In this document: in pieces, positions 27,399 to 61,271 of the stretch
Numbering within the stretch: position 1 is the first letter of the stretch
Layout: every line of letters starts with the position of its first letter
NCBI GenBank assembly: GCA_047495785.1
Contig: JBLDXI010000042.1
Coordinates: forward strand, 4,154,001 to 4,218,000
Direction of reading: 5' to 3'
Origin: Lepidodermella squamata
Taxonomy: Eukaryota > Animalia > Gastrotricha
DNA: 64,000 nt
Translations under genes and position numbers: made by a program
Notes under the pieces: generated by a model
What the model was told of the DNA's origin: nothing
The model's input: the letters and a program-made list of their open reading frames with translations, nothing else
Database searches by the model: none

Positions 27399-27673
27399 TC
27401 ATAAGCATATAGAATAACGCTTAGTTTGGCTGTCGCAAGGCCTGGCCACGCCAACGCCGCCAATCGCACCACGCGCGGCCTCCTCGGCGACTTGCTCCTC
27501 GATGGCTTCACGGCTAACTTCCAGTATAGCTCCAGCCTCGGCTCCACCTTCCGCATCGAACCCAAAATAATCCGGGTGGCCTACGATCAAAATAATAAGT
27601 AAAAGATAAGAGAAAGAAAAATGCATGGAATTTTACTTACCAATAGGGCGAAAATTACTGCGACCTTCAGCAT
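27399..27673 (-). pseudogene. EAxR peptide precursor paralog E, frameshifted
   Basis: Exon 1 MLKVAVIFALL (27673-27641). Exon 2 aligns with the 28503-28763 gene but has an indel near 27555. The homologous frame reads ...EVSREAIEEQVAEEAAR-GAIGGVGVARPCDSQTKRYSICL*. Confidence 0.7.
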
Positions 27674-28502
27674 TTTCGGTCGTTTCTTGAAGATGATAAG
27701 TGCAAGTTTGAGTTTTTCACGAAGAACAAAATTGCACGAATGAAAAGGAGCTATTCGACGTGGACTCATCTTGCTGACTTCCACCAGGCTATCGATTACT
27801 TGTAGGCAGGTGGATCTTTCTTGCGTCAATCATCGTGACATCAACCGGTGATCAACACTATCGTATGTAGATTGCCCGCTATAACTGTTTGATCAGCCGG
27901 ATGATGAGCTCATAGAATGGGAGAGGGGTCTCTGTTTCCATCTCATTATCTAGGTAAATTCTCTTGGCACTCATTCAATTTTTCCCAACCTGCAGTTGAT
28001 ATCTTTGAAAAAATAAAAAAATTCAAAACAAACTCGCATTGAATTCGTGAACATTCGAAATTTCAAAATTTGCAATACTTACTTTTGAAATGTTAATTTG
28101 CGAAAAAAAATTTCACTTGCTCGATATCTACTGTAATTTCTGAATTTTTTCGCATTTTTAATTTACCTCACGCCATATGGATTTTCTGTTGTAGAATTCC
28201 GAAACCATGTATATTTATTGAAAAAGTCATACCCATGGTGCTATCTTGGATACCGGAGCTGCCAGGGATGGAAAAAACCTTTACCTCGCTTTATTACCTA
28301 CCTTTTCAACAGGACAGAAATGTCCTCAATACCGCGCAAAACTGCGAATAGTTATGCAAGTTAACTTTTTATATTACTAGCTTCTCGAGTTTTGCGATTT
28401 CTATTCTTCTCTTTTATTATAATTATTCATCTCGAGGCAACACTTCAACCCTTTTTATAATCGACCTGAGCTCAACATCCAACCTTGCCGCGGCTGTATG
28501 AG

Positions 28503-28763
28503 TTAACCTTGAACGCATCCTTTTCCGGGTTTCCAGTGCGCTAGCGAGCCGCATCTCCTGTCGCGTGCAGCCTCCTCTGCGACTTGCTCCTCGTTGGCTT
28601 CACGGCTCACCGCCTGTAAAGATTCAGCTCCAGCCTCGGCTCCACTTTCTGTTGAACCCAAAATGACCAAGGTGGCCTGCATTTAATTTGATGAAGTAGT
28701 GCAAGTAAGAGAATGAAAAAATGTTCTTACCAAAAGTGCGAAAATGACTGCAACCTTCAGCAT
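28503..28763 (-). CDS. EAxR peptide precursor D, 68 aa, one mature peptide
   Basis: Exons 28763-28731 and 28676-28503: MLKVAVIFALLATLVILGS-TESGAEAGAESLQAVSREANEEQVAEEAAR-DRRCGSLAHWKPGKGCVQG*. AATAAA about 90 nt downstream. Confidence 0.82.
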
Positions 28764-30282
28764 TTTGGTATTTATGTAAAAGTGACAAGTGCAAGTTGGA
28801 AATAATTCGAGTTTTGATGAGGAAAAATTTGCACGAATGAAAAAGATCACCGGGTCAGCGATTCGACGAGAACTCATCCTGCTGATCAAACACATAATGA
28901 CTAACTTGCGCCAGGCTATGGATTCCTTATTGGCGGGTGGGTTCTCTCTTGCGTTCACTACGTGGCGTCAAAGCGTTGTCAACTTGTACGTGAAGATTTT
29001 ACGTGAAATTGCCCGCTAGCTGTTTGGTCAGCCGGATGATGAGTTCATAGAATTTTACTAACCTGCACTTAACATATTTGCGAAAAGCGAAAAGAACAAA
29101 ATTCTGAATTCACATAAACACTTTTTCCAATCGCACTTAACCACAGTAATACTTGTGGTTGTGACTTGTTTTCTTCATTCATTTAATTTCATATGCAACG
29201 TGTGCTATGAAGTTTTGTTGTTCAGTTCAAGAGGCTGAGTTTATCAAAATAAAATGGAAACAGTTGTAGCAAAGTGCATTTTTATGAAGATGAAAGAGCT
29301 TGAACATGATAATCGTCGCCGATTCGATACCCTCAATAATGCATTAGCAAATTCAGAATGACAGTATCGAACATTCAAGAAACCATGCGCTAGTTTCTCT
29401 TGAGTTTCTTTTCAGGTTTTCAAGAGACGAATCCTCCAAAATAACGAATCATGCGATCTAATCCTTCTCCAGGCAGTGAAGTTACTGCTTGGTCGCTTGT
29501 AAGCCGGCTTCACGGATGAAACGACTAAGTTCAGTCGGAAGCCTTTAAAGACACGGATCCTCCGAAGCGGATGGCACTGGCTAATGAGCTGCTAGCAGCA
29601 AAAAGCGTCGCAGCAGCAGCAGCTTTTGAGTACATACCTGTTTCCTTTTGTTGCTCATTGCAGCAGAGGCGGCAACGCGACGGAAAATAAAAAGCTTTGT
29701 AGACCTGCGCTACCGCCGCACGCAGCCAGCTTGAGTATACCCACGACGTTTTGGCGCCGATGCAAAAAGCGCGCCTCTTCTTCATTTTTCTTCGTCATCT
29801 TTTCTTCGGGTTCTTGCTCACCGTTGACTCATCTTAATACTTAATAATCGTTGCTGCATAATAGCCAGCAGAATAACAAACAAAGCTCATAATAACAAAG
29901 TCACTGCCTGGTCGCGTGCAAGCCGTGCCAACTTGTTGGCGACGGTGCTGGCTTCGTTAAACAACGGAAAAAACGCAACACACGCATATCGTTAGGTGGG
30001 CTACAGTATGACCTGCCTAAAATAGAAAGAAATAGCTTAATGCTTTTGATGCGTAGAATAAACTGACGCTCAGTTATTCCGGCAAGCGACTGACTAAGCG
30101 AAGAACTATTGGACGCTGCTGGCCGAAGTAATCGGGCCTGTTATTAAAATTTATATCTGCTATTCAAATCACTGTATAGCCAGCATTTCATTCAGCCAGT
30201 CGTGAAACTTCGCTTTCGTTGGATCCTGCGAAAATATATTATGTTATCCGGATTTGATTATTGTTTACGCCGGATAACAACC

Positions 30283-30427
30283 ATATCCGGCGGTGTCATC
30301 GGTGGACAGCAATGAATATTCGTCCTTCAGGCCACTATTCCGGCCCTCGGCTACGCCTCGGGCCTACATAGCAAGCCTTCAGGCCGATATCCATCGTGCT
30401 ATCCACCTATGATATCCACCCGGATAT
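30283..30427. mobile_element. Imperfect palindromic element resembling non-autonomous Crypton-type repeats
   Basis: ATATCCGG...TCATCGGTGGACAGCA mirrors TGCTATCCACCTATGA...CCGGATAT around a central GGCCCTCGGCTACGCCTCGGGCC. Confidence 0.55.
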
Positions 30428-30661
30428 TGTATAAAATGTAGGTGAAATCGGTTTTAACGCTTTATTGAATATTTGCATTGACTAAGCGAAAATTTAGCTG
30501 AGCATTAACGATTGAACTTTTTTCACAGCACCAACAGATTATTCAAGTTCAAGCATCTTCAGTTTTTGAAACTTATAAAAATAAAAAAGGACCATAGGCA
30601 TCACATGACCATGGGGATTGGAAGTCGCTAATGTTTCTGTGTCAGTTATGCTGCTACAACG

Positions 30662-31914
30662 TTAATTATTGCGTCTGGTTTGTTGTTGTGATGCAATTGG
30701 CACCTGATGAGGATGTGCTCCGGTGATGCTGATTAGCTTTTCGAATGTCATTTCACTGCCCAATAGTTCGGCGATCGGCCCTTCAGATCCTGGACCGAAG
30801 TAGTAGATTTTATTAGACGCCGCCGCTGTGCTATTACTTTTCCCCATTAGTTCGCGACCATAGTACGTTCGAATCGACCGAGCCATGTTGGCATAATTCA
30901 TCTTTGGTTTCGCCTTGTATTCCCCTAAAATTCCGTAATTAATAAGGTTTGGCTATTCCTTGAATATGACGAACACACACCCCATAAACGAGCCACGGCT
31001 TCCGGCTCGGCAATATTGAACTGCCAAGGTTCGTCGCCAGTCCAGTGGATAAGCAACTCGTATTGTTCCGGGTCGATCAGCAGTTGAAGCAGAAATTGCC
31101 TAATAGAATGCGGCATTGAAGCTTCTGGGAAAATGAATACTCTAGACTAGAAAGCTTACCATAGCCATAAGATTTGACCGGGCGGCTTTTGAATTTGGAT
31201 TCGGCGTTTCACGGGTAACGGAACTGGCTCATCGCAGGGTGCTGGAATTGTTTGCACGACTTCATTCGGCTACAAACAACAAAATAAGAATCTTACAACT
31301 TCTGTGTAATCTTCATAATACCATCACGTAGAAAGGATTGACGATGAAGCCCTCGCGTTCTAGCTCGTTTTCAAATTCCATCCAAGGATAGGCTACTTGG
31401 CTTAGTTCCGGTTCAACAACCACATAGGAGCCGTCGATCAGGGATACTTGATGGTAGACAGGTGCTGGCATCGGCCAAGATTGAGGCGCTTGCCAATCAA
31501 CGGGTTGCTGGTAACCGACCGCGTTCATGGAAGTCATCGCAGAATCGTAGGATTGTGTTTGATGTACTGTGGGATAGTTGTAGACTCGTTTATCTAATAA
31601 CACAGAACAAAATTAGCTTCCAACGGAAAATTATGGCGGCGCTATGCATCCTAAAAACTATCACCTATCAAAAGCTTACGCTTACCGAATCCGCTTTCTG
31701 TTGCCGAATGGCATGTCATCTTTTGCGGACAGTTATTGATACCGCCATCTGCCATGACGCTGCCCATATGAGAAATTGGAATAGGATTGTCTTCAAAGCA
31801 ATCGTCATCTTCAGGATCGATATCCAATGGAATGCCATTTCCAGTGCAAAACCCGATGTCGTCTTCGCTGATTGATAGAGACAAAAGCCAATCTGCGCAG
31901 TTGTCGACTGCCAT
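30662..31914 (-). CDS. Divergent ETS-domain transcription factor
   Basis: Five exons. IRQFLLQLLIDP...IHWTG...F.IAEPEAVARLWG splices to EYKAKPKMNYANMARSIRTYY, matching the ETS winged-helix consensus with both recognition-helix arginines. Confidence 0.88.
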
Positions 31915-33994: not shown

Positions 33995-34095
33995 ATATCC
34001 CGCAGCTGTCCCGCAGCCATCCTGCAGCTATTCCACAACTATCCCACAGCTATCCCACAGTTGTCCCGCTAGCTATCCCGCAGATGTCCCGGAGA
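33995..34095. repeat. Degenerate 11-bp minisatellite (CTATCCCRCAG), about 9 units
   Basis: atatcccgcag ctgtcccgcag ccatcctgcag ctattccacaa ctatcccacag ctatcccacag ttgtcccgctag ctatcccgcag atgtcccg. Confidence 0.8.
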
Positions 34096-35048
34096 AGCCG
34101 CAGGAGTACGGGAAAAGTTCGTCATTTAGTCTTATCCTTATCTAAAAGTCTTGAACTCACTTAGTCTGATTACAAATAGTAACTTTTCAAAATTGAGTTG
34201 CCAGTCGCCAGGTCCTCCATTCCGAGTTACAAACAGCTCGAAGAATTGTGCTTTGCGGCACTTGCTTGTCGTCTTTTGCCAGGATTTATGAAAAGATGAG
34301 AAACTTGAGCTTTCCCGCAAAATAACATGTTTATTAGCTTAATTTCACCGGTTGAATAATGACGATTCAAAGTCTTAAATAACCATAATCCTTCGATCCA
34401 GGTAAGCGCGCGGCATCAAACAGCGTCATGCCACTTGCGTGAAATGTAATTTTTGGCCCAGCACAATCGCAGGATGGTGTAAGGTGCTGTCCGAGTGGCT
34501 GGAGGCTGGATGAGGCAGGATCAAGTGCAGGCTTACAGCGCTGCTCAGCCCAATTCAAGCTTTTTGACTTCTCCGTAATTTCATGGCTTTAAGCCAATCC
34601 AACACTGTGCTAATAGACCGCTGCTAGGTAAGCGCTGGACCAAAAGTTGAATACGAACAAACTTTTGCGGATCTGTTCTGTATGCGAGGTATGTTCATCT
34701 CATTACTTGCAAAAATATGCACCTTGCCAAACCACTGGGAAGCGCATCGAGCTCTCAATCAGCGGCCTTGTATCAGGGACTCTTCGGCATCTCACGGATC
34801 GCAATGCTTTTGGATTCTAAAATACTGCATTGACTACAGCGGTTACAATCATAACGAATTGGAAAATGAGTGCAGTTTTCCCTAAGAGTCTGATCTGATC
34901 GATCGAGGCACGTGTGAAATAATACGGAAGGCGTGGAATAAAAAAAATGAAAAAATCAATAAAAAGTCAATGGCTTCGAAATTCACCAAGCAATCAAATT
35001 TCCAACAGGCACAGAGCTTTCTCTTATGCTTTTTATAACAAACATTCA

Positions 35049-39708: not shown

Positions 39709-42700
39709 TCAAACGGCTCCACCGTCGTTGATCGAGAATGGATCTTGCATAGCGCCTGGGTCTTGGCTAGGCGATGGCGCAACTCGGGAGACCGATCTCT
39801 GCCGTCGCTGCCTCGCGTCCGAATCACTCGCCCCACTACCCCGTGAAGTGGCCGAGGGCTGTTCCGCTTGAACGACCCGGTTCTCGGCTCGGCCGGAATT
39901 GACGCGAATCTTACCAGCCGATGACGTCGTCACGGTGATGACCCCGTTCGAATCGTGGCGAAATTCGAGCTGGCCCGGAACTTTGGTCGCCGTCACGGTT
40001 GGCTGGACCTGCTGTGTCTGATCTTCGATTATCCGCTCGCCACTTGTTGAGCCGGGTTTCGAACTTGCAGTGCTGTTGACCGATGACCCAATTCCGGACG
40101 AATTGGCGCCATCACGGTGGCGGCGGCAAATGTGGCCCGATTTTGTAGGTGCAACATGGGATCCGGGCCTGGAACCAACAGCGGAACCCAGTTTACTTCT
40201 AGAACCCCTAAAAATTGAAGAGCATTTTTTTCAATAATTTGAAAATATTTTGAGGACTTACGCAGCTTTTCTGAAGCATAGGAACCAAACTAGGCCGAAA
40301 GCGATGACGCAAACGACGAGGCCAATCATGAGCCCAATCAGCAGCCAACCGTACCATGCGACGCCGTAAGAAGCTGAATTCGAGCTTGCACTCTGAGCCT
40401 GAGCATCGCTCGCGATGGTCACTGAAAATATAAAAAATTTTAAATTCAAATTATTTCATGAATTAGGAGAACCAGGTCATTCATTAAATTAATAAATAAC
40501 GGGTAAATAACGCCTATAAATTTCGGAAAACTGAAAGAATAATCAGAAATTTCAGAAGAAAATTGATTGAATTCTTAAAATTGATTTTAAAAATATTTCC
40601 ACCACTGAAAGGTTCCAGCTATAATTTGAGCTTCCTAAATTTATGTAGTAAAAAAGTCTGGGTCCCCGAATATTTGGTGGCCGCTTGAGCCCATTTCTAA
40701 TTATCAATTTTTCGAAATTAATTTTAGGATTGAAATCCTTAAAAAATTGATTTACTTGGCGATCCTGATTCCAAAACGTTGTTATTATTGTTTCCATTCC
40801 TTGCCGCAATCGTCGAAATACCCGCTCCAGCCGGGCGTTGGCAGATGAAACTTGTCCGGCCGCTCATCGCATTGCAGTCACGTGTCACCCAGTGGTAATT
40901 AGCCTCTGAACTGCTCATTTCAACGCAGGTCATTGAAATCGAGTCAACTAAAGGCTGGTTGTTGTAGGTCGACCAAGCTGCGTAATTAACTAGCGAACCA
41001 TCCGGCCATTGCCATTTACCGCTGCTTGTACCAATCCATACGAGGCCGAGGTATAAGTGATCCGCTAGGGTGGCTACAAGCTCTGAATGAACTTTGGTCG
41101 ACTCTGGGAAAATTATGAAATTTATCAGGAATTTTAATTTATTTTTTTTCAAATTTTACCGATTTTCAATAAATCGCCACCAAGTGATTGGCAATGAGCT
41201 CTGGCGGCGTGCCAAGGTTTTTGAAGGTCGTATAGGACGTAGCAAGTGGTGTATAAGCAGAAGTAAGCCGTCACGCCAGAGACATCGCGATATTCATCTG
41301 ATAATAATGAATTGAAATTTACGAAAATGATTTTTCGCTTTTCTCTTACCGAATTGGCAAATGTGAGCGAGCCGCGTTGAACATTGAACATCCCGCCAAG
41401 GGAATAAAGACCGTTTTCCCATGACGATGGCTCCGCAGCCGCCCTCATTTGCGGGTCGGCCGTCTTCCCAGGTCGAGTATGTCCCATCTGGAAAAATGGA
41501 GGTGAGCAAAAATTAATATTATCATAAAAATGATTTCAATTTTTTCCAGTTAATTAGCCTATTTTCCTAATATAATATTTACAACTAAAATTTACAGAAA
41601 AACCCGATGGAAATAGGTTTGGGAATTATCAGAATTTTATATCCTGAGACCTTATTGAGGCCTTACAAAACTGTTGAACTGAGGATAAGAAATCGTAACT
41701 CTCCAAAATGTTCAAGTTTTTTGCATAAAAAAATTCATTTTTTGACGAATTTCAGATTTTTTTAAATTTCCCGAATTATGTACCGTAAATTACCTAAAGA
41801 ATTCTTGAAAAATTCTAAACTATTTCGAAAATTTAAAAAAGTAAAAAAAAATTAATTTTTAAATGTCTTCTGAATGTTTAAATTTTATTCAAATTTTCGA
41901 ACTTCCAAGTATATTTCAGGATATTTAAGAAGGACTGTCAAACCTATTGCGTAGATGTAATTGGCCCCAACGCCTCCACATTGAGCATTCGAGTCACCAC
42001 CACACGGCGTGTTGCAGTTCGTAGTCGGCGGCAGGCTGCCGTAGTTAGACCCACAAAAGCACTGCCGGCCGCCCTGAACGCCAGCGAAGCGTGACGTCGG
42101 CTGCGTGCGGCAATACTCGACGCAATCGCCATTTTTCATCGTATACATAAACTGACTCGAGACATTCAAATCTCGCTTTTCGGTATTATCGATGTAGCAA
42201 CCCTGGCCGAAGAGCAGCGACCCGTCCTTAGCCCAGGTCCATTTGTCGCGGACGAGGCGCAGGCCGATCAACGCGCGGCCCCACGCGCGCATTTCGGCCG
42301 AGTTTGCGAGGAAACTCTGCACGCCGGCGTTGGCCACCTTGGCGAGTGTTTTGCCACGGGACTGGCACAAATCGACGGCTGATGTGTAGCTAACAGGTGT
42401 CGTGTTGTTGACAAAGTCGTAACAATTGCCGTCGTAGTACGCCTCGTCGTTAGTACAAAATTGCGATCCTGATTCGAAAAGCGAGAAAATTAATATTATA
42501 TATTATTATTATAAAAATCAAATATAATTTTCGAGGTCATTGACACGCATCGATAAGAAGAAAAAATTATTCATTTTCGGCAATATTAGAAAAAAAATTA
42601 TTCTAATAATGTTTTGAAATGCGTCAATGCCGACATTTAAGCAAATGTCAAATGGGCAATCAAAATTGCTAGAAATCCGAAAATTCAATAGTTCATTACA

Positions 42701-43815: not shown

Positions 43816-43842
43816 AATAATAATAATAATAATAATAATAAT
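43816..43842. repeat. (AAT)n microsatellite
   Basis: About nine AAT units. Confidence 0.9.
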
Positions 43843-46729
43843 GATAACGCGCCGCAGGGTGCGCAAGTCGGATGAATGTATCGAAATATTAATAATAATA
43901 ATTTTTATATAATATTTCACTCGAAATTGATATATAAACGCGTCACTAAGCAACTTCCGAGTGGTGCCAGTGTGGGTCGGCGCCAGCTCGCCTTGCGATG
44001 TAAATTATTGTTAACAAATTCTCTCCGTGTGGACAACAAAAAATTTGTTTGCGGCTATTAAAATGTAAAAACGCGCGCAAATATTTGCGGGTAATTTTTC
44101 GCGAAAAAACTGCGTAATTATTTGAGTAGAAAATGCCATTTTTAACATTATATTGTCAAATTTAAGAACGAGTGATCAAAGCTCAAACATACATACCTTG
44201 GTTACAACACATTTGATGACTGTGTATATCGGTATATACACATTATATTTGCAGTCCTAGGCGACAAAATGTGCGACAAGGTAGCAGTATGAAAAAAGTG
44301 CGCTCGTGTTTACGCTGTTATTTGATGGTATTTTTGATGCCGCCGCCGCTGCCGCCGCTCGATTTGCGCTCATAATCGATGCGATTCGTAAGATGCGCGC
44401 GCGCGCACGTATTTGCGATTAGCGTCAATAATTTATGACAATGGGCGGCAATTTTTTCCGTTTTATTGCACCTCCAACCAACACTCAGCCGTGCCGATTC
44501 ATCGGTGTATACTAAAAGGTGGAAGAAATATCAATTGGATAGAGGCTGAGCTTAATTGCTAAACTTAAGCTCCGTCATAAATCTTAATTAGGGCCGATAA
44601 AAGAGAGCATATCATTACTCAATATTTTTCGTTTGAAAGAGGTTATTGCGGAAGTGGAAAAAGCCCTATATATAACTGAAACTTTGCCAAAATGCAAAAT
44701 CCACCCTGAACCATAACACTGAGCCCGATCATCGTTTTGCTGCAAACGGCGATTTTGCCTTTCGAACCTTTAAACATTTCCCAGTATACATATACTGACC
44801 ATCAGAATCTAAACTGCGATGCAACGCCGTGTAATTTGCGTGTCAATATCATTAAAAGAATCCGAGTTCCATAAAAATAAAATCTCATAAACAACCAGAA
44901 AATCTGTGCCCGGTCAAATTTCTGCAGCTTCTCATTTTGATGTGTTAGATGTGATAAATTCTGGTGCCATTTTGGTACGAAACTAAATTATCAGGATCCC
45001 TTTCCATATTCATGATCGTGAGTACTAGGAATTAGTATGAGTATTAGGAATTCGGCCACGCTAACGGAAGAGAATAAAGTATTTCAGAGGGACTCTAGAC
45101 TCAAATTCGATTCTCCGAATCAATACAGGGTGTCTACAGCGCATACAGCGAACCTTCGAGGATCGAGTAAATCCTTAGGTAGAAAAAAGTAAGAAAATGA
45201 ATACGCTGATAATCATGAAAAAATAAATGCGTGTTTCTTTAATAAAAATAATGAAATTGCAAAGTAAAAAAGGTGTATGGCTCACACACACCAGATTTTC
45301 TGTACAATGCCTATTGACAGCTGGCAACACGGTATTTTTACGTTCGAGTACGCAAGAAAGATGAAAAATGCAATGCGAATCATAAAACATTGTCTTCCCC
45401 TTTCTTGCGAACGGTCTTATTTGTCTGTCTCTTTTGCTGCCGTATTTGCCCTAATAACGTTTTTCATTCGATTTTCTGTATTCTCACCAATAGCTGTAAT
45501 TCAAAATTCAATGGACAGGTAGCATTGACATGGTATATTTATAGGAACTTATTGGCTACATTCAGCCATCACAGTCGGGTTCTAGAATTTGACCAATGCC
45601 GGAAACTGGGATGACTCTTCCACTGCCTGCTGCATGAATCTCAGCTCTGACACTACAGCAGTGGTCCCAACGGACAGGCGAAGTGAAGAAGACCGTAGGA
45701 TCTTGGTATCCAATCAATATGCTTCAATATACTTTTTTATTTGCTTATGGCCAGTGTACGAAGTAGGATCCGGGAGCTAAGGTGTTTTCTAGCACCCAGC
45801 CGAAGAAACCAAGGGGCCCCCCTGTGGTTTTTCAGGTGCTCTCTGGTTGGAGTCTCGGAGCTGGAGGCAACCTTGTACTTCGCACCCTTATGACTTTTCA
45901 ACTCAGCCGAGCTGTCACTTGGGATGATTTTGCCCAAAACTAGCATTGATGAACAAGTGCAAAGTTGCTCGCTGATTAGTCAATTTGATCTCAGTTCAGA
46001 ATTCCAGCTTATGTCATATCAAGCGTGTAATCTATCGCTACATCTAACGTTCCGTTAACAACTTTTAACCGGAATGCGGTCAGCTATATCATCGATGACA
46101 TTAGCAACGCTTTATGCAATATGTCTGAGGATCTTGTAATACAAATCGTACAAATGTTCGAAGCAAAATTGTCCAAATTTCCGCAGAAATGTTTTCTAAC
46201 TGGCAATGAACTAACGTACAATTCTCGTTCCCATGAAAAAAATCAGTTTCACGGTATTGGCAATTGAGAAAATTTTGACAAACGCGATTAAGCATGTCAT
46301 AACAGGTGGCCGATTTTCAGAGGCCCTTGCTTGTGTTTCCAATCAGTAGTAGGAATCGACTTGACAGCTTAGCAATCGCCGGCTATTCGCATGATGTCTG
46401 GTTGAATTTATCACAAAACCTGTTAATATTCCGTTGGCCATGTGAGAACTCATTTGTCCATGTGTTTTGAATAAGCATTTCAGACGTCGTATCACATATA
46501 TAGATCTTACAAAACAGACAACGTGACAAAACGAATCATGCATGAGTGTTGCGCAAAGATGAGTGAGAGCGCATAACTTGGCACATAGCCAATCGATACA
46601 TCAGCATAACCCCCCCCTACCTCTCCCTGTTGTTGATCTTCCGGAAAAGGAAAACATCTCATTGGAAGTCTCCAAGTACCTTTAACCTTTAACGTAACTG
46701 AGGGATCTGGATTATTCCTCTGGGAATGC

Positions 46730-49122: not shown

Positions 49123-51558
49123 ATGTTCTTCTCAATGATGCTTATCGTTACCAATATTATAATGAGCTACGCCGCAAAGCCGAAAACCTTGTCTCTTCTT
49201 GCGCTCGTGCCCAAGTTTGATTTCGAGCCATTGGGAGGTCCGATTTGTGAGCTATCAATGCAAGTCGCTATGAATGAGGCAAACTCTCGAGTGGACTTAT
49301 TGAAAGACTACTATTTGAACGTGACTTACAGCGACGATGGCGAGGATACCCCTAGCCTTTTCGGGAATGCCCTGAAGAACTATTTTGAATACCTGAAGGC
49401 TGAGGAGAACCACGTTTTGACCGATAGCATAATAACCACTACTAGCCCTGTTTTTGTGGGGACATTCAGCCAAAACGGTTGTCAGTATCTTGGAGCTTTT
49501 GCCCATATCTACAATATGGTAAATATTGCCACGGGATGCAACTGGCCGGTTTTCACGGCAAACCGACGGATATATCCGAACTTCTACCGTAGTGCTATTT
49601 CTGATGAAATGACTATTTTCCCGGTGATCAAATTCATTAAAGAAGTCGGGAGTTGGAATAGAGTCGCTATCCTAGCCACATCTTTCCTACCATATGATGC
49701 CATGAGTTCTCAATACGCCTACCAAGGGTTGAGTAGAGAGGGCATTCAAGTTGTTTGGTTCAACCAATTTCCTGCAATCGACGATTCTTTCGCATCTTTA
49801 AAAGCAGCTAATGTTCGAATAATTGTCATCTATCTTCTTCAAACGGATGTTCTTTTTGAGACGTTATGCTTATGGCAAAAAGTAGGAATCACCCCGGAGA
49901 ATGGCTACATCTTCATCTTCCGAGGCCCGACAATTTACAGCGAAAACGAGGTGATTGATGCTTTGAAATTCGTGTGTCCAAAGGAGGTTGTCATAGCTCA
50001 ACTAAAGTCATCATTTTTCATTGGCTCTGTCGAATGGCAGATGACTTCTGAAGGGGAAAAGGTACCGACCAGCTTAAGATACAATATTTACGAGTTCGAT
50101 AGCCGATTGAGCGCTTTGGTGCGCGAAAGAACTACGACCCCAACGACTTATCTCAATGGTTACCAGTACAGGTCTCGATGCCACGATACCATGCTTCAAA
50201 GCATAATGACATTGGATAGTGCAGAGAAGATGCTCCAGAGAGAAAACCTGACCCTTTCAGATTACAGATTATTCCCCGAAAAAATATCAAGAGTTGTTAA
50301 CGAAAGTGCGGCTAGCGTAAGGTTCAGTGGTCTGAGGGGGGGTCTCACCTCTTATTCAGAGCGCGCTGAGTTTGATAACGAAGTCCAGCACATCAAGCAG
50401 TGGTCTTTGAATACAGGAGGTCTCGGTCGACTTTTGTACAAAGTCAACAAAATCAGGCCCGACCCTCACTCCAGCGGCTCCTTTGCTTTGGAGAAGATAG
50501 CAGATCCTGTCTGGTTCTTTACATCTCAAAATGGGCGGCCTCCGAAGGATTCATGGGGCTTGAAGTCAGAGCTAGTAACATCTTCGATACAAATGAAAAT
50601 TTCGGTCGTAACGATAGCTGGATTGCTGTTTGCTTGTGAAATTCTGCTGCTATTTAGGATGATCTGGTTTAAGATTAAAAGGGGAAAGCTTATGTCGCGG
50701 CATATAGCCTTAATCTTAGGACTAACTCTTCTGCTCGGTTCCTCAGTAAGTTTCATCCTGGATTTCGATAATTTGAAGGTGAGTGACGCAATGTGTCTTA
50801 TTCGCTTCTCGCTACTTGCTGTCGGCTTCTCCGTTGTCACTGGTACATCTTTGCCTGCGATGGTCACTGCATATCATTCCAAGGCAGCGATGTCTCAAGT
50901 GAGATTAGACCCTAAGACCAGTTGTGCTAGAGATTCGATTAGAAGGGAAAGCCACTTGAGCGTTAACTTCGCCCAAAACACCAGTATGTATCATCCGAAA
51001 ATTCGAAACTCTCGACAGTTCCAGCCCATGAGCGCTAAGCTTGAGAGAAGCTTGATTATTGTATTTTCGCTTGGCATCCCTATCCTGAATGCGATAATTC
51101 TTGTGGCGTGGTTCATTACCGAGAAATCCATCGCCAAATTGGTCGGCTTTTCGAAAATTCCTATGTACGACCCAATAACCGATACGTTCATTAGCGAGCT
51201 CGCAATCGCATGCTCATCTTCGAATCAAATTACCTGGACAGCTATACTCGTATCTATCCAAGCTGTGGTATTGATCGGATCCCTGTTTTTCGCGTACGAA
51301 TTGAGACATTTGCAGACACGCGATTGTGAAGAATTGAAACATGTCACGCAGCTGCGCATTGCTAGCGTGAATTCGGCGTTGATGTTCACAGCCACAGCGA
51401 TCATTTTACTCATATTTCCGAATTCACTTCACCAGCATGAAATAATGGCGATTTCAGTGTTGATTTACACATTGGCCACTAGCCTAATATTTTTCGGCGT
51501 AGGAGCGACTATGAAGCCTGCGCCGACGCCTCAGGCACTACTTCATCTCGTGACTTGA
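49123..51558 (+). CDS. Class C GPCR, GABA-B-like (Venus flytrap plus 7TM), intronless, 811 aa
   Basis: Signal; AMNEANSRVDLLKDYYLNV, YPNFYRS, WNRVAIL, ANVRIIV, FSGLRG, NGRPPKD; seven hydrophobic segments; no Cys-rich linker. Confidence 0.85.
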   Translation: MFFSMMLIVTNIIMSYAAKPKTLSLLALVPKFDFEPLGGPICELSMQVAMNEANSRVDLLKDYYLNVTYSDDGEDTPSLFGNALKNYFEYLKAEENHVLTDSIITTTSPVFVGTFSQNGCQYLGAFAHIYNMVNIATGCNWPVFTANRRIYPNFYRSAISDEMTIFPVIKFIKEVGSWNRVAILATSFLPYDAMSSQYAYQGLSREGIQVVWFNQFPAIDDSFASLKAANVRIIVIYLLQTDVLFETLCLWQKVGITPENGYIFIFRGPTIYSENEVIDALKFVCPKEVVIAQLKSSFFIGSVEWQMTSEGEKVPTSLRYNIYEFDSRLSALVRERTTTPTTYLNGYQYRSRCHDTMLQSIMTLDSAEKMLQRENLTLSDYRLFPEKISRVVNESAASVRFSGLRGGLTSYSERAEFDNEVQHIKQWSLNTGGLGRLLYKVNKIRPDPHSSGSFALEKIADPVWFFTSQNGRPPKDSWGLKSELVTSSIQMKISVVTIAGLLFACEILLLFRMIWFKIKRGKLMSRHIALILGLTLLLGSSVSFILDFDNLKVSDAMCLIRFSLLAVGFSVVTGTSLPAMVTAYHSKAAMSQVRLDPKTSCARDSIRRESHLSVNFAQNTSMYHPKIRNSRQFQPMSAKLERSLIIVFSLGIPILNAIILVAWFITEKSIAKLVGFSKIPMYDPITDTFISELAIACSSSNQITWTAILVSIQAVVLIGSLFFAYELRHLQTRDCEELKHVTQLRIASVNSALMFTATAIILLIFPNSLHQHEIMAISVLIYTLATSLIFFGVGATMKPAPTPQALLHLVT

Positions 51559-52328: not shown

Positions 52329-54377
52329 ATGGTAAATGGCGGAACAGAAGAAGCACAGAAAAATATGCTTCACTGGGCTGACTATGTTGTATTCGGCCTT
52401 TTGCTAGTTATTTCAGCCAGTGTTGGCCCTATCAGTTTATGGCGGAACCGCAACAAAGCAACGACCGCGGAAAGGTTATCATGAACATTTTAAAAATTTT
52501 CTTATTTTTCATGTGATCTGTTTTATAGTTATTTCATGCCGAAAAAGGGTCTTCACCTAATCCCGGCGAGCGCTTCCCTTTTCGCGTCTTTCTTCTCAGC
52601 ATCGAGCATAATTTCAAACCCCCTTGAACTCTACGTAGGCGGTGCTAGGTTTTTCATGACTAGCATCGGCCAAGCAATTGGGATCATCATCGGAGCAATT
52701 TTTATAGTACCAATGCTCTACCGGCTTAAAATCATGTCATCGTACGCATATTTTGAACTTCGATACCAGTCGAAACTTCTGCGAAAGGTGAATTGTGCTA
52801 TGGGCGCATTTGCCAGCACCTTCTACCTCGGCATTGTCACATTCGCGCCATGCATTGCCCTGGAAGCTGTGACTCCCATCCCCGTTTGGGCTAGTATCAT
52901 CGTCTCCGCCGGATGTACCATGACCTATTCCGTCCTTGGCGGAATCAAAAGCGTTGTCCTGGTTGATTTCATACAAGCAGGTGTTATGTTCATTGGCGTG
53001 ATTGCAGCATTGATAATTGGTTCGTCGAAAATCGAAGGCGGATTCTCAAGGGCGATTGAGGTTGCCTCGGAACATGGACGGCTGACGTTTTTGGACTTCA
53101 ACCCGGATCCCAGGAATACTTACTCATTCTATGCGACGGTTTTCCCCGCGATTGTCTTGGCGGCGAATATTTTTACGAGTACGCAGCCAGCTCTGCAGAG
53201 GTACGCCGCCCTTCCGAATGTCAAACAGGCTGTGACGTAAGTTTTTAATCCGTATTTTTTGGCTTTAATCCTAATTTCATTTTTTCAGATCCGTCCTGCT
53301 TCTTGCACCTCAATATGTTGCGTTGAAATCCCTACTACTCCTCCTCGCTACTGTGATGTTTGCTCATTACCAAATCAAAGGTAATTTACTTCAATATGCT
53401 TGGAATACAGGTTTAACTATAAAGTCTTAGGCTGTGATCCTTTGAGGGGTGGCTTGGTGAAAAATCCGAATCAGCTTTTGACTCACTACCTCTCCGAAAT
53501 ACTCCAATACCCAGGCGTTTTAGGCCTGTGGTTCGCTGCCCTCTTTAGCGGGGCTTTGTCTACAATGTCAACGCGTTACAACTCAATAGCTTCAGTGATC
53601 TGGGAAGATTTGCTCAAAGAACTTCTTTCACCACGCCTTTCACCCCGAGGAATCGCGATAGCTCTGAAAGTCACCTCATTAAGCGTCGGTCTCGTCTCTG
53701 TGGCTCTTGCCATGCTTTTTCAAACCTTCCAAGGCTCCTTGATGCAACTGGCCAAGGCAACATGTAAGTCAAGACCTTTCACACGCATTGATATTGATAT
53801 GCCTCGATTTTTTCAGTAAGCGTTTTCGGTAGTCCCCTGGACATCGCCTTCACAGCTGGGATTCTGTTTCCATTCGTGAATGCGGCTGGTACTGTCGTTG
53901 GAATGTTTTTAGCAGCAATCTTCACAGCGGCTATATCCGCTGGTCAGATCGGGTTCAGCCTAGGAAGTAAGAAAAGCTGGCTGCCAACGAACACTTTGAA
54001 CTGCACTGTTACAAATGCTACAACTGTGGCTAAAAATTCAACAACGAAATTTTACCTGCCAGAACCGATCGAATTTATGTTTTCGATCAGTTTTTATTTG
54101 TACCCTTTTATTGCTCTGCTGCTCGGCATGATTGTTGCGATGCTGGTCAGTTTATGTACAGGTTGGTAAATTCTAATTTTGCAATTCTTTGAATTCACGG
54201 GATTTTGATTGTTCAGGTGGACTCAAGAATGCTCGCTCAGTTGATGGTGCTACTCTAGTCGTGAGGAATTGTTTTGCTGGCAAGCTTCCGAGCAACGACG
54301 CTGTACAAGTTGGAGATGTTGGTCTGAAAGCTTGTGATACGCCATTGCTAATGCCGACACAAACCTCGAATTTGTGA
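52329..54377 (+). CDS. SLC5 sodium:solute symporter (SMCT/SMVT-like)
   Basis: Six exons. WADYVVFGLLL, ASLFASFFS, SSYAYFELRY, LGGIKSVVLVDFIQ, QPALQRY, CDPLRGG, ALFSGALSTMS. Confidence 0.92.
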
Positions 54378-54826
54378 GCTATAAGATGCTGACTACATTG
54401 ATCCTGGTGTTGAATACGGTATTTAGTAACTAAAAATTTATTGTTGCGAATGGCTTTCAAGTTTCAATAAATCTGTTGAAAAGTTGTCAGTTGCCAGTTT
54501 GGCGTGGAATCTCAAGTCAGAATTTATGACAAAAGCCTCATAAAAAGGTGTATGACTCCCTTGGTATGAAAATGGTAGCATGTAAAGTCAGCTGCGCCAT
54601 CACATTTTGATGGAATTGTCCACTCCAAGAAATTAACCTAGGCGAAAAACACCTCAATATTAGAATTTATTTACATTTGCAGTAGCTAGCCATTTATTTC
54701 AGTCAATCACAAAAACCAACACCTTTACTGCAACTCTCAAGAAATTGCTCACAATAATATCACTTTGCGACTCGACAAACATCTCCACAATTTCACGATC
54801 TAGCCACTACATCTTGCCGATGCCCG

Positions 54827-55141
54827 TTAACCATGGGTGGAGACGCATCGAGTTTCCGTCGCTTCCCTCGTGCCGTAGGGGCAGGAGCCGCGTTGGGCTT
54901 CTTGCAAAACTTCCGCCGGTTCCTCGCGTCCAGAGCCGATCTTCTTGCAAACCGTAAACGTTTCCAGCTTTTGGCCCCTGCCGCATCTTGTGGGGGCACG
55001 CTCGGCTTCTTGCAAAACTTCCGATTCAGTTTCGGCAGTGACGGCGAACACAACGCAAGCCTGAAATAAAATACGTAACTTTATGATATATGGAAATAAT
55101 ACTGAACTTACGACAATAGCAAGAGCAAGGTAAACTTTCAT
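54827..55141 (-). CDS. EAxR peptide precursor A, 87 aa, two mature peptides
   Basis: Exons 55141-55112 and 55060-54827: MKVYLALAIVACVVFAVTA-ETESEVLQEAER-APTRCGRGQKLETFTVCKKIGSGR-EEPAEVLQEAQR-GSCPYGTREATETRCVSTHG*. Confidence 0.88.
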   Translation of the reverse strand: MKVYLALAIVVSSVLFPYIIKLRILFQACVVFAVTAETESEVLQEAERAPTRCGRGQKLETFTVCKKIGSGREEPAEVLQEAQRGSCPYGTREATETRCVSTHG

Positions 55142-56624
55142 TGCGAATTTCAACTATTAGGACTGAAGACTGAACAAAAGTGTTTTAAAGATGAGAAAAA
55201 TGCAGAATGACACAGGGTCGCTCTGCCCATTCGATGAGCAGTTCGCTACACCTGCTCAAACATTTTCTGTGCCAAGTCGCCCGGGTGCTCATTATGTTAT
55301 GCCAAGGGCAAGGCCTCCTAATGAATAAAAGCAGCTGAATAATTGAAAATTAAATGAGAGGGGGATATTTTGCATGCCAATACTAATATGATAATAGGAA
55401 TAATAGTCATTTACCAAATGTACTAAAGTAAAAGGAAAAATTGTGAGAAGCAGTTTCGGTGCGAAAATTTATTTCAGTAATTAAGAGTCATCACTTGTCA
55501 TATAGTATGTACGTAGCTTTTTATGAGTTTTCGGTTGATTTTGTTATTTGTTGTTCATACTTCCGTAAGGTTGCCGTTCGAGTCGTCACGAACTCACGTA
55601 TTCATCCATTTTGCGCTATTTTTCTAAGAAAAGAATATTTTCGTTACCTGGCTAGCGCGCACCGGTCGCTGCACTCGTGCGAAGGGGCCACATATATATA
55701 AATTAAATCTTGAATGCATGTCCCGCTATTTTATAAATTGGCACTACGTGGCCCTGAAGATCAGTTCGCTACTAATAAAGGTGTATTTTCTCGGCTATTT
55801 TGTCTTGTTCGCTGACCGGGGACTTTCATATTTTTTTCGTATGATATTGAATATCGCACTGCCATTGCTTGATTCCAGCACGAGTTCTTATCGTTTGTTG
55901 CGATTTATTGCATTAATCACAATTGTCATCATGATTGAATAATTTTCACGCATACCCATTATGGGACACTGCACAATTGAAACGGTTAAAATTCATGATT
56001 GGGCCAGAGATGTCCAAAATTAAATGAACTAAAGTGAGACGAAATACGTTTAACGGGCGAATTTCTGCTCTTTCGGTGCGAAATCTTAGTAATTTAGGGC
56101 GATATTGCCGTTGTCTACCATCATATGAACCCTTCAATAACCCACGGTTTTCATGGGTTTACAATTGCCGTGATCACGACATTGATACTCGCTTGTCTCT
56201 ATCATCGCGCGCGTTTACTATTAGTCGCAATCGACATATCCGCCCAGTTGATTTCTTACGAGCATCGTAATTTCCCCATCAGATATATGATGTCCAGATT
56301 CATATTGCTTCGATGTCCAGATTCATATTGCTCCCATGAACAATCTTGAAACTACCGTCGGATCAAAGCAGGTTTCGTGATACACATGTGACATACCTAT
56401 TGTTCAGCGCACTAGAGAGCACCCTCCTCGCTCATTATTATCATGAAAAAGGAGTATCTGAGAGGAGCAGAAGCATTTATTTTAGACACTCTCCAAAACC
56501 GACATCCACGTTATACCATCAAGTCTCACAGCCATTATTGCTGCAAAGTAATTTCGTACTCAACAGCTATATCCACTGTTTACGATAATATATCCTTCCA
56601 GCCCTCTCAAATTGCAAATTCCTC

Positions 56625-56973
56625 TTAACCACGAGGGGGCAGGCATTTAGTTTCCTTTACTAGTCTGTCCTCGTTGGGTCCGCAATCGGGCATGTAAGGG
56701 TTATTGCCGCGTTGGGCTTCTGACTCTGGATCAAAGCTGCGGGGTTTGCCGTTGAGTTTCTTCACGCAATGCGCTATAAGCGTCGGGACTTGGCCTTTGG
56801 GGCATGGGTTTTTCCATTGCGGAGCGCGTGCAACTGCTTGAGGTACTTGGAATGCATATTTGCCTTCAGCTGTAGCGACGATCATAACGCAGACCTGTTT
56901 TTTATGCAAAAATTTAAATGGTATCAGCATCAACAGAACTTACCAGAAGAAGAAAAGTTAGGTAGGCTCTCAT
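56625..56973 (-). CDS. EAxR peptide precursor C, 99 aa, two mature peptides
   Basis: Exons 56973-56944 and 56894-56625: MRAYLTFLLLVCVMIVATA-EGKYAFQVPQAVAR-APQWKNPCPKGQVPTLIAHCVKKLNGKPR-SFDPESEAQR-GNNPYMPDCGPNEDRLVKETKCLPPRG*. Confidence 0.85.
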
Positions 56974-57157
56974 TTTGAGCTTTAGCGATTAACCGAGAAA
57001 ATAAAGTTTAAGATGTCAGAAAAAATGCAGAATGAAGAGAGGTTGCTCTTTCTATTCGATTCGCTACGCAACATGTTTTGACGCCAAAGTCGCCTGGGCG
57101 CCAGGGCTCATTGCGTCATAGGTCTAGCCGGGTAGGGAATATAATATACTGAATATA

Positions 57158-57890
57158 ATGTACTGCGATACCACTCTCTCGCAGCTGGCACCGACCAAGC
57201 TCAGCAAACTACAACGTCGCCAAGACCAGGCCGTAAGAATCATTTGCCACGCTCCGATGAACGCGGACCCAGCACCGCTCAGACAAAAACTCGGATGGCT
57301 GGATCTTGACGGAAAACGAAAAGTTCACCTGGCAACACTGATCTGGCGCTGCATTAATGGTGAGGCCCCGGTAGCAATAGCCAACTTCTTCAAACTTCGA
57401 ACCGCACCAATGGCTTCTACCCGCAAACAAAACGCCCTCAAAGAACTCTCAAACATCCTAGAGGTGCCCAGGGCTAAGTCAGCGATCATGGATCGGTGTT
57501 TGGCTCACCATGGATCGGTATTTTGGAATTCTCTCCCCGACCACATCCGCACATCCAAAACTGCCGACCAATGCAGAAACTTGGTTTACCGTCACCTGCT
57601 TACACAACAAAAAGAACTTACCTCAAATACCGCCGCCTGAAACCAGAAGACAAGAGCATTTGCATTTTATATTTTTATATTGATCCTGCTACAAACCAGC
57701 ATTCATCACAATTGTTTTCTTTGTTGAGCTATCTTCTTTTTTATACATATAAGTTACATGATGTTTATAACTATCTAATCTTGTGTACAGTTTAAATCGA
57801 ACCTAACTAATCCATTGTCTTTTTTTACAGCTGAGCTTTCCAACTTTTTCTAAAAACGGATGAATGGCTCATAAATAAATAAATAAAATA
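57158..57890 (+). mobile_element. 5'-truncated non-LTR retrotransposon (CR1/L2-group ORF2 tail)
   Basis: YCDT...KLQRRQDQAVRII...LGWLDL...WNSLPDHIR is typical of the post-RT region; 3' UTR ends in (TAAA)n at about 57871-57890. Confidence 0.85.
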
Positions 57891-58215
57891 ACAGCTGAAA
57901 ATGCAACGAAGAGACTTTTCGCACCGTCAGTCATAATACAAGATTAATAATAAAATAACTGTAGCTTAAGTTTGCCTCTAAATATGCATAAAAGTTGTCG
58001 ACTTATTACAATATTCGCCAAGAAGTACGAAGTGAGCAGTCTCTCGGGCTCCTCTGTCAGTTAAGATGCTCATTCTACCATTTTAATTGTATACAGCGGA
58101 TTTTATTAGCCGATCGAATACTTCGTTCTCGGTATGTACGAATTAGTATATGCAATTTGAACTATATTCATTATTGTAATAAAACATTTGAAATTAATAA
58201 TTAATGTCAAAGTTA

Positions 58216-60317
58216 TCAAAGGCGAGAGACAGCATCATTTTTGCTTGGTCTTGAGTTTCGAAGTTCGGCAAGACAAACATCGATTTGGCTTTTCACGCGA
58301 TAAACGTTCTCCATACTTTGCAGGAACATGTTGGCAACACCGCGGAAAACATCGGTTGTTACACAAGGATCTTGGACGAAATTGAACCGGACGAGGAAGT
58401 TCTTGCAAGAAGCAGTGCATTCCTGAGCAGGGAATGTTGCAGCGTTAACGCAGCTCGGCAGCAAACCTTGGCCAGGACTCATTGACAACAACCCCATTTT
58501 CATGCCGAATTCAAAGACCGAGCAGTTTTTGATCCTTAGGCTAGGCATTGAGAAACCTTGTGGCAAACTCGGCATCATCGGAATTTCAGAAGGCAAACCC
58601 ATTGGACCACCTAAGCTCGGTAATGGGAGAGGACCAGCACCTAGAGGATTCGGTAATCGCATCGGAGCTCCCGCTCCAGGTAGAGGCATTGATCCACCAG
58701 CACCAGGTGGTCCTCCAGATCCTAGCTTCCCGCCTGACATCATACCCATCAAGTTGGGAGCATTCATGGCCAACGTCATCAAACTCCGCATTTCACACCC
58801 GCTCAGCTGAAATTTTCGAATAATTATACACATTTGAAGAATAAGCTATTTTACCTCTCCGTTTGAGACATAAGGATGGAAACTGCTGTTCATTGGTCGA
58901 GGGTAGACCTCAAGAAAGACTAAGCACATCTCCTCCGTTGTTTTTTCCCCGAAAAAAGTGTAACGATCTTTGACCTCAGTAGTTGTGTATCCGCATTCAA
59001 TTTTAAGGTCGTCGCCCGCCTCCAATATCGGAGCTTGTTCCTTAGTCTCCCATACCAAGAATTTAGGCCTATCATAGGTAACTGGCTCATCGATAAGAGT
59101 AATCCTTTGCCCATCAGCTTTTGTGTGCACGAGTTTAACGTGCGTACCCAGCTGGTGCATGTGGAATAGAATAGAAGCAAGATAATACCTGCCGTTTCCA
59201 AACAACTTCTCACTGCAATTGGGCCGATTGAAAGCTCTCGCCTCAACTTGTATCGATTCAGCATTCGGGGGCAGAGCGAAATCGATCTGGCCAAGGTTGA
59301 TCATCGCGGTATCGAAAGGACGGCTCTTTTCCGCGTACCAAATGCTAATGCCAGACGAATCGACAATATTCTCGTACAGCAATGGGTTGTTGTAGTGAAT
59401 TTGAACAATAATCCGGCGGAAAGCATTTTTACCCATCAAAAGGCCTGTGTCGTTGTTGAAGCATCTCCCCTTTTGCCTGAGAAGAAGCTTAATTTTAACG
59501 ATTAAACGAAAATTTCTTGACTAACCCAAACGCCCAAACCATTCCCATGGACATGCAAATGCCAGGCGTCATCGGGCAAAATCCAGCTGTTTCGTACTTT
59601 TTGCTCGAAACCAGATTGTTGACCTCAGCATCGCTGTTACATGTGGCAACCGTCAAATGATGCATGAGCTCCTGATTATCGATGATCGGCTCCCACTAAG
59701 ATATGAAATCTTAGCTCAACCCATTTAGTAAATTGTGAACCTACCGCTATAACCTGATAATCCTTATCTGAGGGAACTTCAAACTGCTGACAGAAGTAGA
59801 TCGTATCGTTTTTAGGCAATAGAGTGTTGTTAAAGCGAAGCTCGATCATTTTCACCGAGGAATCACTGACAGCAGGACACAAATCGTCTTTCGTGATATT
59901 AAGGGCCTGAACGCATTGGCCGTTGTTTATTAGGAAGTTGTTCCTCTTGCGGCAATTCTCAGATCTGATGGGCTCGCAGACTCCAGGGTGGCTGAGCTGA
60001 GTCGATTTAGGGTGAGCTTGATCTGATGCCCAAAAACAGCTTGGATCTCCTAACTCCTCTCCATTCGTCTTTCCATCTCCATCGCTATCTTTGCGGCATA
60101 GCTCGGGAGTCCATTTCTTGCGAGAAGCTAAGAAGTCGCGACCAAATGGGTTGAGAGGGCCCATGCCCAGGACAGCCTCATGGCCAAGCCCTTTCCAAAT
60201 CTCACCTGGGCTGCATGGATTCGGAATCGCATCACCATTCGGTATTTCTAATTGAAACTGAGGGAAAGAAAACGCAAACAGTGGGAAAATAAGAAGGTTT
60301 ATGAGAAACGAAAGCAT
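58216..60317 (-). CDS. Secreted temptin-domain copper type II (DBH/PHM-family) monooxygenase
   Basis: Four exons. Signal; temptin motifs IPNG, GLGH, NPFGRDF, DSDGDGKTNGEELGDP; CuH ligands MHH and QIHYNNP; CuM ligands FHMHQLG and EEMC; Pro/Gly/Met-rich linker and Cys-containing C-terminus. Confidence 0.92.
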
Positions 60318-60952
60318 TTTAAGCTATGGAATAAGCAAAAGTTGTAAACATTTGCCATTTACACATGGTTAATATAGCTGATCCGCGTCTCTTCGACAAT
60401 GTTGAATTTTGTCTAGTGTGAAATGTCAAGTTTCTCTGTACATTTATTTATATGTAAACGCTACAATACTCATGGTAATACATCAATGAGCCTCTTTTTC
60501 TTATGAACAACACACTAGGGCATATATAGGGAGTAAAAAACGTGCTCTCTTCTACATTTCCCCAAAAGGTCTCGTTTCAACTTTTTAATGCAATGAAATC
60601 GATGCCAGATTTTATGAATTCTGGGAAAGCCCTTTTACACTCCATGTAGCTTATACAGAAGGTGCATGAATCCCCTGTAAAGAAATTGATAGCAGGTTAC
60701 AGTCAGCTGCGCCCTGCGCCATCACTTTTCGATGGAATGTTTTATGCTCCTAGAAATGCACCTAGCCGAATACCAACCCAAGATGAGAATATCTTTACAT
60801 TTGCAGCAGCTAGCCATTTATTTCAGTCAATCGCATATAAACGAACACCTTCAATGCAACTCTAAAGAAATTTCTCACAATAATATCACTTTGCGACTCG
60901 ACAAACATCTCCACAATTTCACATTCAAGCCACTACATCTTGCCGATGACCG

Positions 60953-61271
60953 TTAACCATGGGTGGAGACGCATCGAGTTTCCGTCGCTTCCCTCGTGCC
61001 GTAGGGGCAGGAGCCGCGTTGGGCTTCTTGCAAAACTTCCGCCGGTTCCTCGCGTCCAGAGCCGATCTTCTTGCAAACCGTAAACGTTTCCAGCTTTTGG
61101 CCCCTGCCGCATCTTGTGGGGGCGCGCTCGGCTTCTTGCAGAACTTCCGATTCAGTTTCAGCAGTGATGGCGATCACAAGGCAAGCCTGAAATGAAATGA
61201 ATAAATTTATGATATGGAACCAACTGATATGCTGAACTTACGATAACAGCGAATGCCAGGTAGGCTTTCAT
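60953..61271 (-). CDS. EAxR peptide precursor B, 87 aa, duplicate of A
   Basis: Exons 61271-61242 and 61186-60953. Signal MKAYLAFAVIACLVIAITA; pro and mature regions identical to A. Flanks also duplicated (about 54585-55560 versus 60700-61712). Confidence 0.88.

Follow-up and report, generated by a model that had tools for sequence, protein, structure and literature searches.

What do five small genes on the minus strand of a gastrotrich contig encode? The genes, called A to E here, lie in a stretch of 64,000 nucleotides from Lepidodermella squamata (NCBI GenBank assembly GCA_047495785.1, contig JBLDXI010000042.1, positions 4,154,001 to 4,218,000 of the forward strand), which we refer to as the window and in which all coordinates are counted from the first letter. 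An earlier inspection of the letters (the sequence-only reading) had proposed a five-gene family of two-cysteine, glycine-terminated secreted peptides, cut from their precursors at single arginines. Reading the minus strand and translating the second exons confirmed all five genes at the positions listed below. On balance we think it probable that they encode secreted, amidated, one-disulfide effector peptides that are lineage-specific and host-defence or toxin-like, as judged from their sequence motifs.

Gene A, 27399..27673, minus strand: broken copy, given as one part; exon 1 peptide identical to that of gene B.
Gene B, 28503..28763, minus strand: simple-precursor layout; exon 1 28731-28763, intron 28677-28730 (54 nucleotides), exon 2 28503-28676.
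Gene B peptide module, 28506-28562, minus strand: Cys-x11-Cys with a Gly-stop end.
Gene C, 54827..55141, minus strand: binary-precursor layout; exon 1 55112-55141, intron 55061-55111 (51 nucleotides), exon 2 54827-55060.
Gene C parts, minus strand: peptide 1 plus Gly 54929-54997; Arg-to-Arg linker (13 residues) 54890-54928; peptide 2 plus Gly 54830-54889.
Gene D, 56625..56973, minus strand: binary-precursor layout; exon 1 56944-56973, intron 56895-56943 (49 nucleotides), exon 2 56625-56894.
Gene D peptides, minus strand: peptide 1 plus Gly 56748-56825 (Cys-x11-Cys); peptide 2 plus Gly 56628-56708 (Cys-x12-Cys).
Gene E, 60953..61271, minus strand: recent duplicate of gene C; exon 1 61242-61271, intron 61187-61241 (55 nucleotides), exon 2 60953-61186.

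The five genes share a compact anatomy, much as it had been described. Each opens with a short first exon (11 codons in A and B, 10 in C, D and E), hydrophobic in all five, which is separated from the second exon by a phase-0 GT..AG intron of 60, 54, 51, 49 and 55 nucleotides in A, B, C, D and E, respectively, placed within the predicted signal peptide. The donor is GTAAG and the acceptor AG in every gene. The start of the second exon prolongs the hydrophobic stretch (mean Kyte-Doolittle value 1.7-2.7 over its first 9 residues; 1.5-2.7 for the range covering both exon 1 and the exon 2 start), and AATAAA follows 85-144 nucleotides past each stop codon. Splicing is required in A, B, D and E because, left unspliced, they lose the frame through an in-frame stop or an intron length not divisible by 3. 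Gene C has an intron of 51 nucleotides that could be read through in frame; in the near-identical gene E the matching intron measures 55 nucleotides, and this difference of 4 nucleotides speaks against the open stretch in C being coding. When both strands were scanned for this anatomy (short hydrophobic first exon, GTAAG, short intron, hydrophobic continuation), the five genes were returned along with two chance matches. By these marks A to E are real stand-alone genes, the secretion of their small precursors being itself predicted from motifs, and the best explanation is that they are compact transcription units, of a predicted size of about 0.5-0.6 kb, encoding secreted prepropeptides.

A second shared feature lies upstream of each start codon, where a core-promoter motif, TCATTC(N)TGCA (10-11 nucleotides), occurs at the following places.

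Gene A motif (TCATTC-N-TGCA), 27733..27743, minus strand: 70 nucleotides upstream of the ATG, with TCGAAT just upstream.
Gene B motif, 28830..28840, minus strand: 77 nucleotides upstream of the ATG.
Gene C motif, 55201..55210, minus strand: 69 nucleotides upstream of the ATG.
Gene D motif, 57026..57035, minus strand: 62 nucleotides upstream of the ATG.
Gene E motif, 61324..61333, minus strand: 62 nucleotides upstream of the ATG.

Six sites of this motif are present in the 64-kb window, where 0.53 would be expected, and five of the six stand 62-77 nucleotides upstream of the A-E start codons. Combined with TCGAAT 8-30 nucleotides further upstream, the motif has four matches against 0.02 expected, all at genes of the family; gene E carries a one-base variant of TCGAAT. 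The sixth site (17712) was considered as the marker of a sixth gene and rejected, as it falls inside an ankyrin-repeat coding region. The coding pattern Arg...Cys-x9-13-Cys...Gly-stop is likewise enriched, with six occurrences in the window against a shuffle mean of 1.29, four of them in the family genes. The frames at 25476-25523 and 45856-45927, which also show the pattern, were not accepted as members, having neither the promoter motif nor a first exon. Both kinds of enrichment, in the promoter motifs and in this frame, were greater than in any shuffle. The shared core-promoter motif probably drives A to E together in one secretory cell type.

How far the five genes form a single family is a separate matter. 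Protein similarity divides them into two sub-families, A/B and C/D/E, with clear similarity inside each (A to B, E value 2e-7; C/E to D, E value 4e-6; D and C 36% identical in exon 2), whereas comparisons between A/B and C/D/E gave E values above 2 and an hhalign probability of 1.3%; global nucleotide identities between the distant paralogues were about those of the alignment baseline. The unity of the family thus rests on promoter and architecture and not on peptide sequence: both groups carry the promoter motif, have a first exon of similar size and an intron at the same position and in the same phase, and follow one module plan of pro-segment, Arg, Cys loop and Gly. We infer from these that A to E belong to one family, with single modules of the B kind and doubled modules of the C kind, held together less tightly than the sequence-only reading had stated. 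Of that reading's interpretation, a lineage-specific set of amidated disulfide peptides, the parts that stood are that these are real genes for small secreted precursors, that no described family in the collections searched accounts for them and that they carry an amidation signal; unity as one family was the part weakened.

Genes C and E lie within a duplicated segment of ~1 kb (54545-55560 and 60659-61715), along which identity is unevenly spread. The sequence coding for peptides and linker is identical at 162 of 162 nucleotides, synonymous sites included, and promoter plus 5' untranslated region at 61 of 62, the promoter motif of C sitting in an island of ~125 nucleotides that is 93-97% identical to gene E. 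Exon 1 (22/30) and the intron (36/51) are only 71-73% identical, and the flanks, at 83-86%, are less diverged than either. The profile therefore implies that the peptide part and the promoter have been maintained, by selection or by gene conversion, and a drifted signal-peptide exon and intron beside them make the pattern that would be expected of working genes. The complete identity of the peptide-coding part is recorded here as an observation in its own right, to be read as gene conversion or as unusually strong constraint. Against this background it is very improbable that A to E are non-functional, either as chance open frames or as decaying copies of a duplicated segment. That one copy, A, is broken and that no homologues were found in the databases searched would suit such an explanation; against it stand the far better conservation of the coding part and promoter of C and E relative to intron and flanks, an architecture common to paralogues that are only 36% identical, and the motif enrichments beyond every shuffle.

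Copy A itself had been described as frameshifted, and when spliced like its relatives it does have one frameshift relative to B. Its B-like frame reads Cys-x9-Cys and lacks the terminal Gly. A mechanical exon scan offered a longer GT-AG interval whose removal would preserve the frame; this was not adopted as the intron, since no relative shares it.

In the intact genes, the pro-segments end in a single Arg at the sites that had been named, and the peptide modules follow a common plan. Gene B holds one module, an acidic pro-segment (net charge -6) ending EEAAR and then a 19-residue Cys-x11-Cys stretch with Gly-stop. C and E each have an acidic pro-segment of 12 residues, with EAER at its end, which leads to a 22-residue basic peptide (net +4, Cys-x11-Cys) and Gly-Arg, after which a linker ending EAQR introduces a 19-residue neutral peptide (Cys-x11-Cys) and Gly-stop. 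The linker repeats the end of the precursor's own pro-segment; it extends 13 residues from Arg to Arg, with Glu at positions 2-3 and -3, and has an isoelectric point (pI) of 4.5. Gene D keeps the plan of C and E with other residues: an AVAR site, a first peptide (net +4) followed by Gly-Lys, an EAQR site, and a second peptide with Gly-stop. Pro-segments are 12-27 residues long. In B and C the pI values of pro-segments and linker are 4.1-4.5, against 9.7-10.1 for the adjoining peptides, and the peptide of B and the first peptides of C, D and E have net charges of +3 or +4.

Several features are kept across modules that are otherwise dissimilar, namely the pair of Cys and the distance between them, an Arg in front of every peptide, and the terminal Gly with a stop or basic residue after it. 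Spacing in the five intact modules is 11, 11, 11, 11 and 12, and the exception with twelve residues, which had been seen before, is the second peptide of D. As also reported, GGT TAA closes all four intact genes (B, C, D and E). The terminal Gly is followed by a stop or a basic residue in five of five intact modules (Gly-stop in B, in the second peptides of C and E and in that of D; Gly-Arg after the first peptides of C and E; Gly-Lys after that of D), while the neighbouring residues vary. This is the canonical amidation signal, so that the Gly reads as an amidation donor, just as had been suggested.

The motifs allow a maturation route to be predicted. The signal peptide, split by the phase-0 intron, would be removed first. 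An Arg-specific protease would then cut after the single Arg in its acidic E-x-x-R context, yielding a single peptide from B and a pair from C, from D and from E, and excising the 13-residue acidic Arg-to-Arg linker in the case of C and E. The released peptides, of 18-25 residues, would each hold one disulfide (Cys-x11/12-Cys), probably in a beta-hairpin, and would be amidated at the C terminus from the terminal Gly. Cleavage at single Arg sites, amidation and disulfide formation are all predictions from motifs. Usual prohormone convertase sites have an upstream basic residue, and a single Arg in an acidic context is atypical of them. At the candidate sites here, positions -4, -6 and -8 are all non-basic, so these are not usual prohormone convertase sites; a protease that tolerates acidic neighbours would be needed.

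Such a context is known from spider venom, where the processing quadruplet motif (PQM) is, as the sequence-only reading stated, an Arg at -1 with a Glu at -2 to -4 (PMC7889660, PMC8290080). Linear peptides of spider venoms (latarcins, cupiennins, lycosins) are released from simple, binary and complex precursors at PQM sites and at inverted PQM (iPQM) sites, in which Arg comes first and Glu follows; the linkers are 11-13 residues long, with Arg at both ends and an iPQM plus a PQM, the pro-segment end serves again as linker, and products bear C-terminal amides (PMC7889660, PMC8290080). The gastrotrich precursors resemble these in having a signal peptide, a pro-segment ending E-x-x-R, and then a single peptide in B or a pair in C, D and E. 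A pro-segment end of PQM type is found in B, at both sites of C and E and at the second site of D, and is absent at the first site of D. The 13-residue acidic linker of C and E, which reuses the pro-segment end from Arg to Arg with an iPQM and a PQM, is like a spider linker, while that of D fits the spider definition loosely, since its first residues are Lys-Pro-Arg and its net charge is zero. In both systems acidic spacers adjoin basic peptides, and here the terminal Gly is the predicted amide donor. Differences are equally plain. Every gastrotrich module has two Cys, unlike the linear, cationic amphipathic helices of spider venom, which are free of Cys or have one, and the precursors differ from those of spiders in lacking sequence similarity, in their shorter pro-segments, in the intron within the signal peptide and in one site without Glu. 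The window is also unlike a spider genome, with 43% G+C, introns of about 50 nucleotides, distantly related proteins and a temptin/monooxygenase fusion. Processing in such an acidic context has so far been described only for spider venom. We raise, tentatively, the prospect that PQM/iPQM-like single-Arg processing may operate in an animal unrelated to spiders, probably a lophotrochozoan, where simple and binary precursors controlled by their own promoter motif would give rise to amidated one-disulfide hairpin peptides of a class not seen before.

Structure prediction bears both on the shape of the peptides and on whether they are released at all. AlphaFold2 on the C/E/D alignment, with C as model, gave a mean predicted local distance difference test (pLDDT) score of 60 and a predicted template modelling (pTM) score of 0.41, with both Cys loops as beta strands (pLDDT 74-77); with D as target the mean pLDDT was 52 and strands lay over the second halves of the loops. 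A disulfide-closed hairpin is thus a plausible model for the Cys loops. That two hairpins appear in one model of C, at the low pTM given, would also accord with small secreted proteins that undergo no internal cuts, in which the product would be the whole chain of 45-80 residues left once the signal peptide is removed, with its two or four Cys, and E-x-x-R and Gly would be incidental. The occurrence of E-x-x-R where cutting would destroy a peptide, and the lack of Glu at the first site of D, point the same way. We nevertheless consider an uncut chain unlikely, as it leaves without a role the pro-segment end repeated as a linker in C and E, the Gly plus basic residue that follows the first peptide in both C and D despite differing neighbours, the Gly-stop at the end of all four intact genes, and the same module standing alone in B.

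To what known family might amidated hairpin peptides of this kind belong? The sequence-only reading had recognised none, and the searches it called for agreed: no described family matched in Pfam, the Protein Data Bank (PDB), large protein collections or metagenomes. Exons were searched separately, by reference, and the B sub-family was searched in Pfam, in the PDB and within the window. Pfam, at E values up to 10, returned no family for B, C or E and only a chance GST_N match for D; a PDB sequence search with whole second exons and with each module separately found no relative. The single match of B below an E value of 0.01, to an Ala/Glu-rich stretch of a PsbY polyprotein, was discarded as compositional, since no stretch passes by itself. 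A word-indexed search of 5.8 billion proteins with exon 2 of C, which covers lengths of 42-135 residues, was blank. An exhaustive HMMER profile search with the C/E/D alignment against 1.84 billion representatives, without a length limit, gave no credible relative; its sole match, a 960-residue tandem-repeat frame, was spurious, since 12 weak stretches add up to its score. No hit came from a metagenome scan with the same alignment, and a full-text literature search for the four Cys-to-Cys loop strings found no match. The sequence family is new to all collections searched, and the kind is familiar: tandem, fast-diverging precursors of small secreted peptides.

Two known types invite comparison. 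Peptides of the arenicin and thanatin type are beta-hairpin host-defence peptides with one disulfide, and arenicin-type precursors carry a BRICHOS domain. The gastrotrich peptides are similarly short and cationic, with a single predicted disulfide and a predicted beta-hairpin, and come from a larger precursor. They differ in Cys spacing and in sequence, the searches gave no match to that type, no second peptide in C, D or E is cationic, and a Pfam search found no BRICHOS domain in the precursors. Peptides of the CCHamide, CCAP and vasopressin type have loops of 4-6 residues and dibasic cut sites, and are single-copy and conserved across phyla. With these the genes share, as predicted from sequence, one disulfide loop, a Gly-derived C-terminal amide and a precursor with a signal peptide; their 11-12-residue loops, single-Arg sites and tandem divergent genes without relatives set them apart, and again no search matched.

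The second comparison leads to the main alternative, that A to E encode lineage-specific signalling peptides, that is, precursors of neuropeptides, hormones or waterborne pheromones, processed and amidated in the same way and directed at the animal's own or conspecific receptors. We regard this as a possibility to be taken seriously, if a doubtful one. Multi-peptide precursors, a Gly plus basic amidation signal and amidated products with one disulfide are typical of neuropeptides, and A to E have this design; the peptides of C and E are kept identical; the second peptides are neutral rather than cationic; and genes for a class C receptor and a temptin-domain protein lie nearby, which may be coincidence. 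Neuropeptide families are, however, usually conserved across phyla, whereas no homologue was found in the databases searched; the tandem paralogues have strongly diverged loops; and the single-Arg acidic cut sites, with no upstream basic residue, are unlike a prohormone convertase context. Because the peptide loops of tandem paralogues have diverged to 36% identity and database relatives are lacking, fast-evolving effector peptides are favoured over conserved hormones.

Several observations weigh against the effector reading, or against the maturation route on which it draws. The second peptides of C, D and E have a net charge of 0 and are not cationic. The first site of D, AVAR, has no Glu and its pro-segment is not acidic, and the Gly-Lys-Pro after the first peptide of D makes a poor context for basic cleavage. 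Further E-x-x-R motifs fall within the Cys loops of the second peptides of C and E (54830-54889 in C) and of D (56628-56708); a rule based on the motif by itself would cut the products too, so something more must define the cut sites. Gene conversion, and not selection, could be the cause of the agreement between C and E at synonymous sites. The copper type II monooxygenase encoded between D and E was considered as the amidating enzyme and rejected, as it is closer to dopamine beta-hydroxylase (E value 5e-13) than to the amidating enzyme (E value 2.5e-4); the neighbour therefore gives amidation no support. Overall confidence in both structure models is low, and a fold search with the C model was blank, its best E value being 0.63. 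Secreted, amidated effector peptides are, with these points counted, still the reading that we put forward as probable.

The surroundings of the genes are of interest in their own right. C and D lie between a solute symporter gene and the temptin/monooxygenase gene, and other coding features of the window are as follows.

5881-6483, plus strand: DEG/ENaC channel exon.
10665-12044, plus strand: MFSD6-like (major facilitator superfamily, MFS) transporter, with best database matches only 25-26% identical.
40739-42370, minus strand: C-type lectin/WSC exons.
52536-53819, plus strand: sodium:solute symporter.

The temptin/monooxygenase gene (58216-60317, minus strand), which stands between D and E, joins a signal peptide and Temptin_C (E value 1e-35) to the copper type II monooxygenase. 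A 160-residue open frame between D and this gene (57158-57640, plus strand) has no Pfam family, and presumably resembles the C-terminal tail of a non-long-terminal-repeat (non-LTR) retrotransposon protein. The class C receptor (49123-51558, plus strand) is a single open frame of 811 residues with ANF_receptor and 7tm_3 domains, for which a word-indexed search found no relative at E values of 1e-10 or below. Long exons characterize a type IV collagen gene (22239-24725, minus strand), whose NC1 domain aligns with human chains apart from an insertion of ~20 residues. Direct repeats at 3068-4054 and 14965-15950, 11.9 kb apart and 87-98% identical, may represent a segmental duplication or a repeated element. 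Four open frames of the window, looked up for exact matches, were not on record. No tRNA was found in the window, and an Rfam scan of it returned nothing at gathering score or at E values of 0.5 or below. Fusion of temptin to a monooxygenase was reported only from lophotrochozoans in a 2009 paper, with the older sampling of that date (PMC2762978); its presence here is a hint at a lophotrochozoan. A metagenome scan with the monooxygenase exon found one locus, at 28% identity.

Animal genomes commonly contain small secreted peptides in lineage-specific families. If confirmed, the genes described here would add a new sequence family of amidated disulfide-loop peptides, and their spider-like precursor logic, with acidic spacers, single-Arg cuts and a reused linker, would represent convergence, in a distant animal, in the cheap production of many small bioactive peptides. 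The promoter motif, gene-specific within these 64 kb, would help to find the remainder of the gene battery and the cell type that expresses it.

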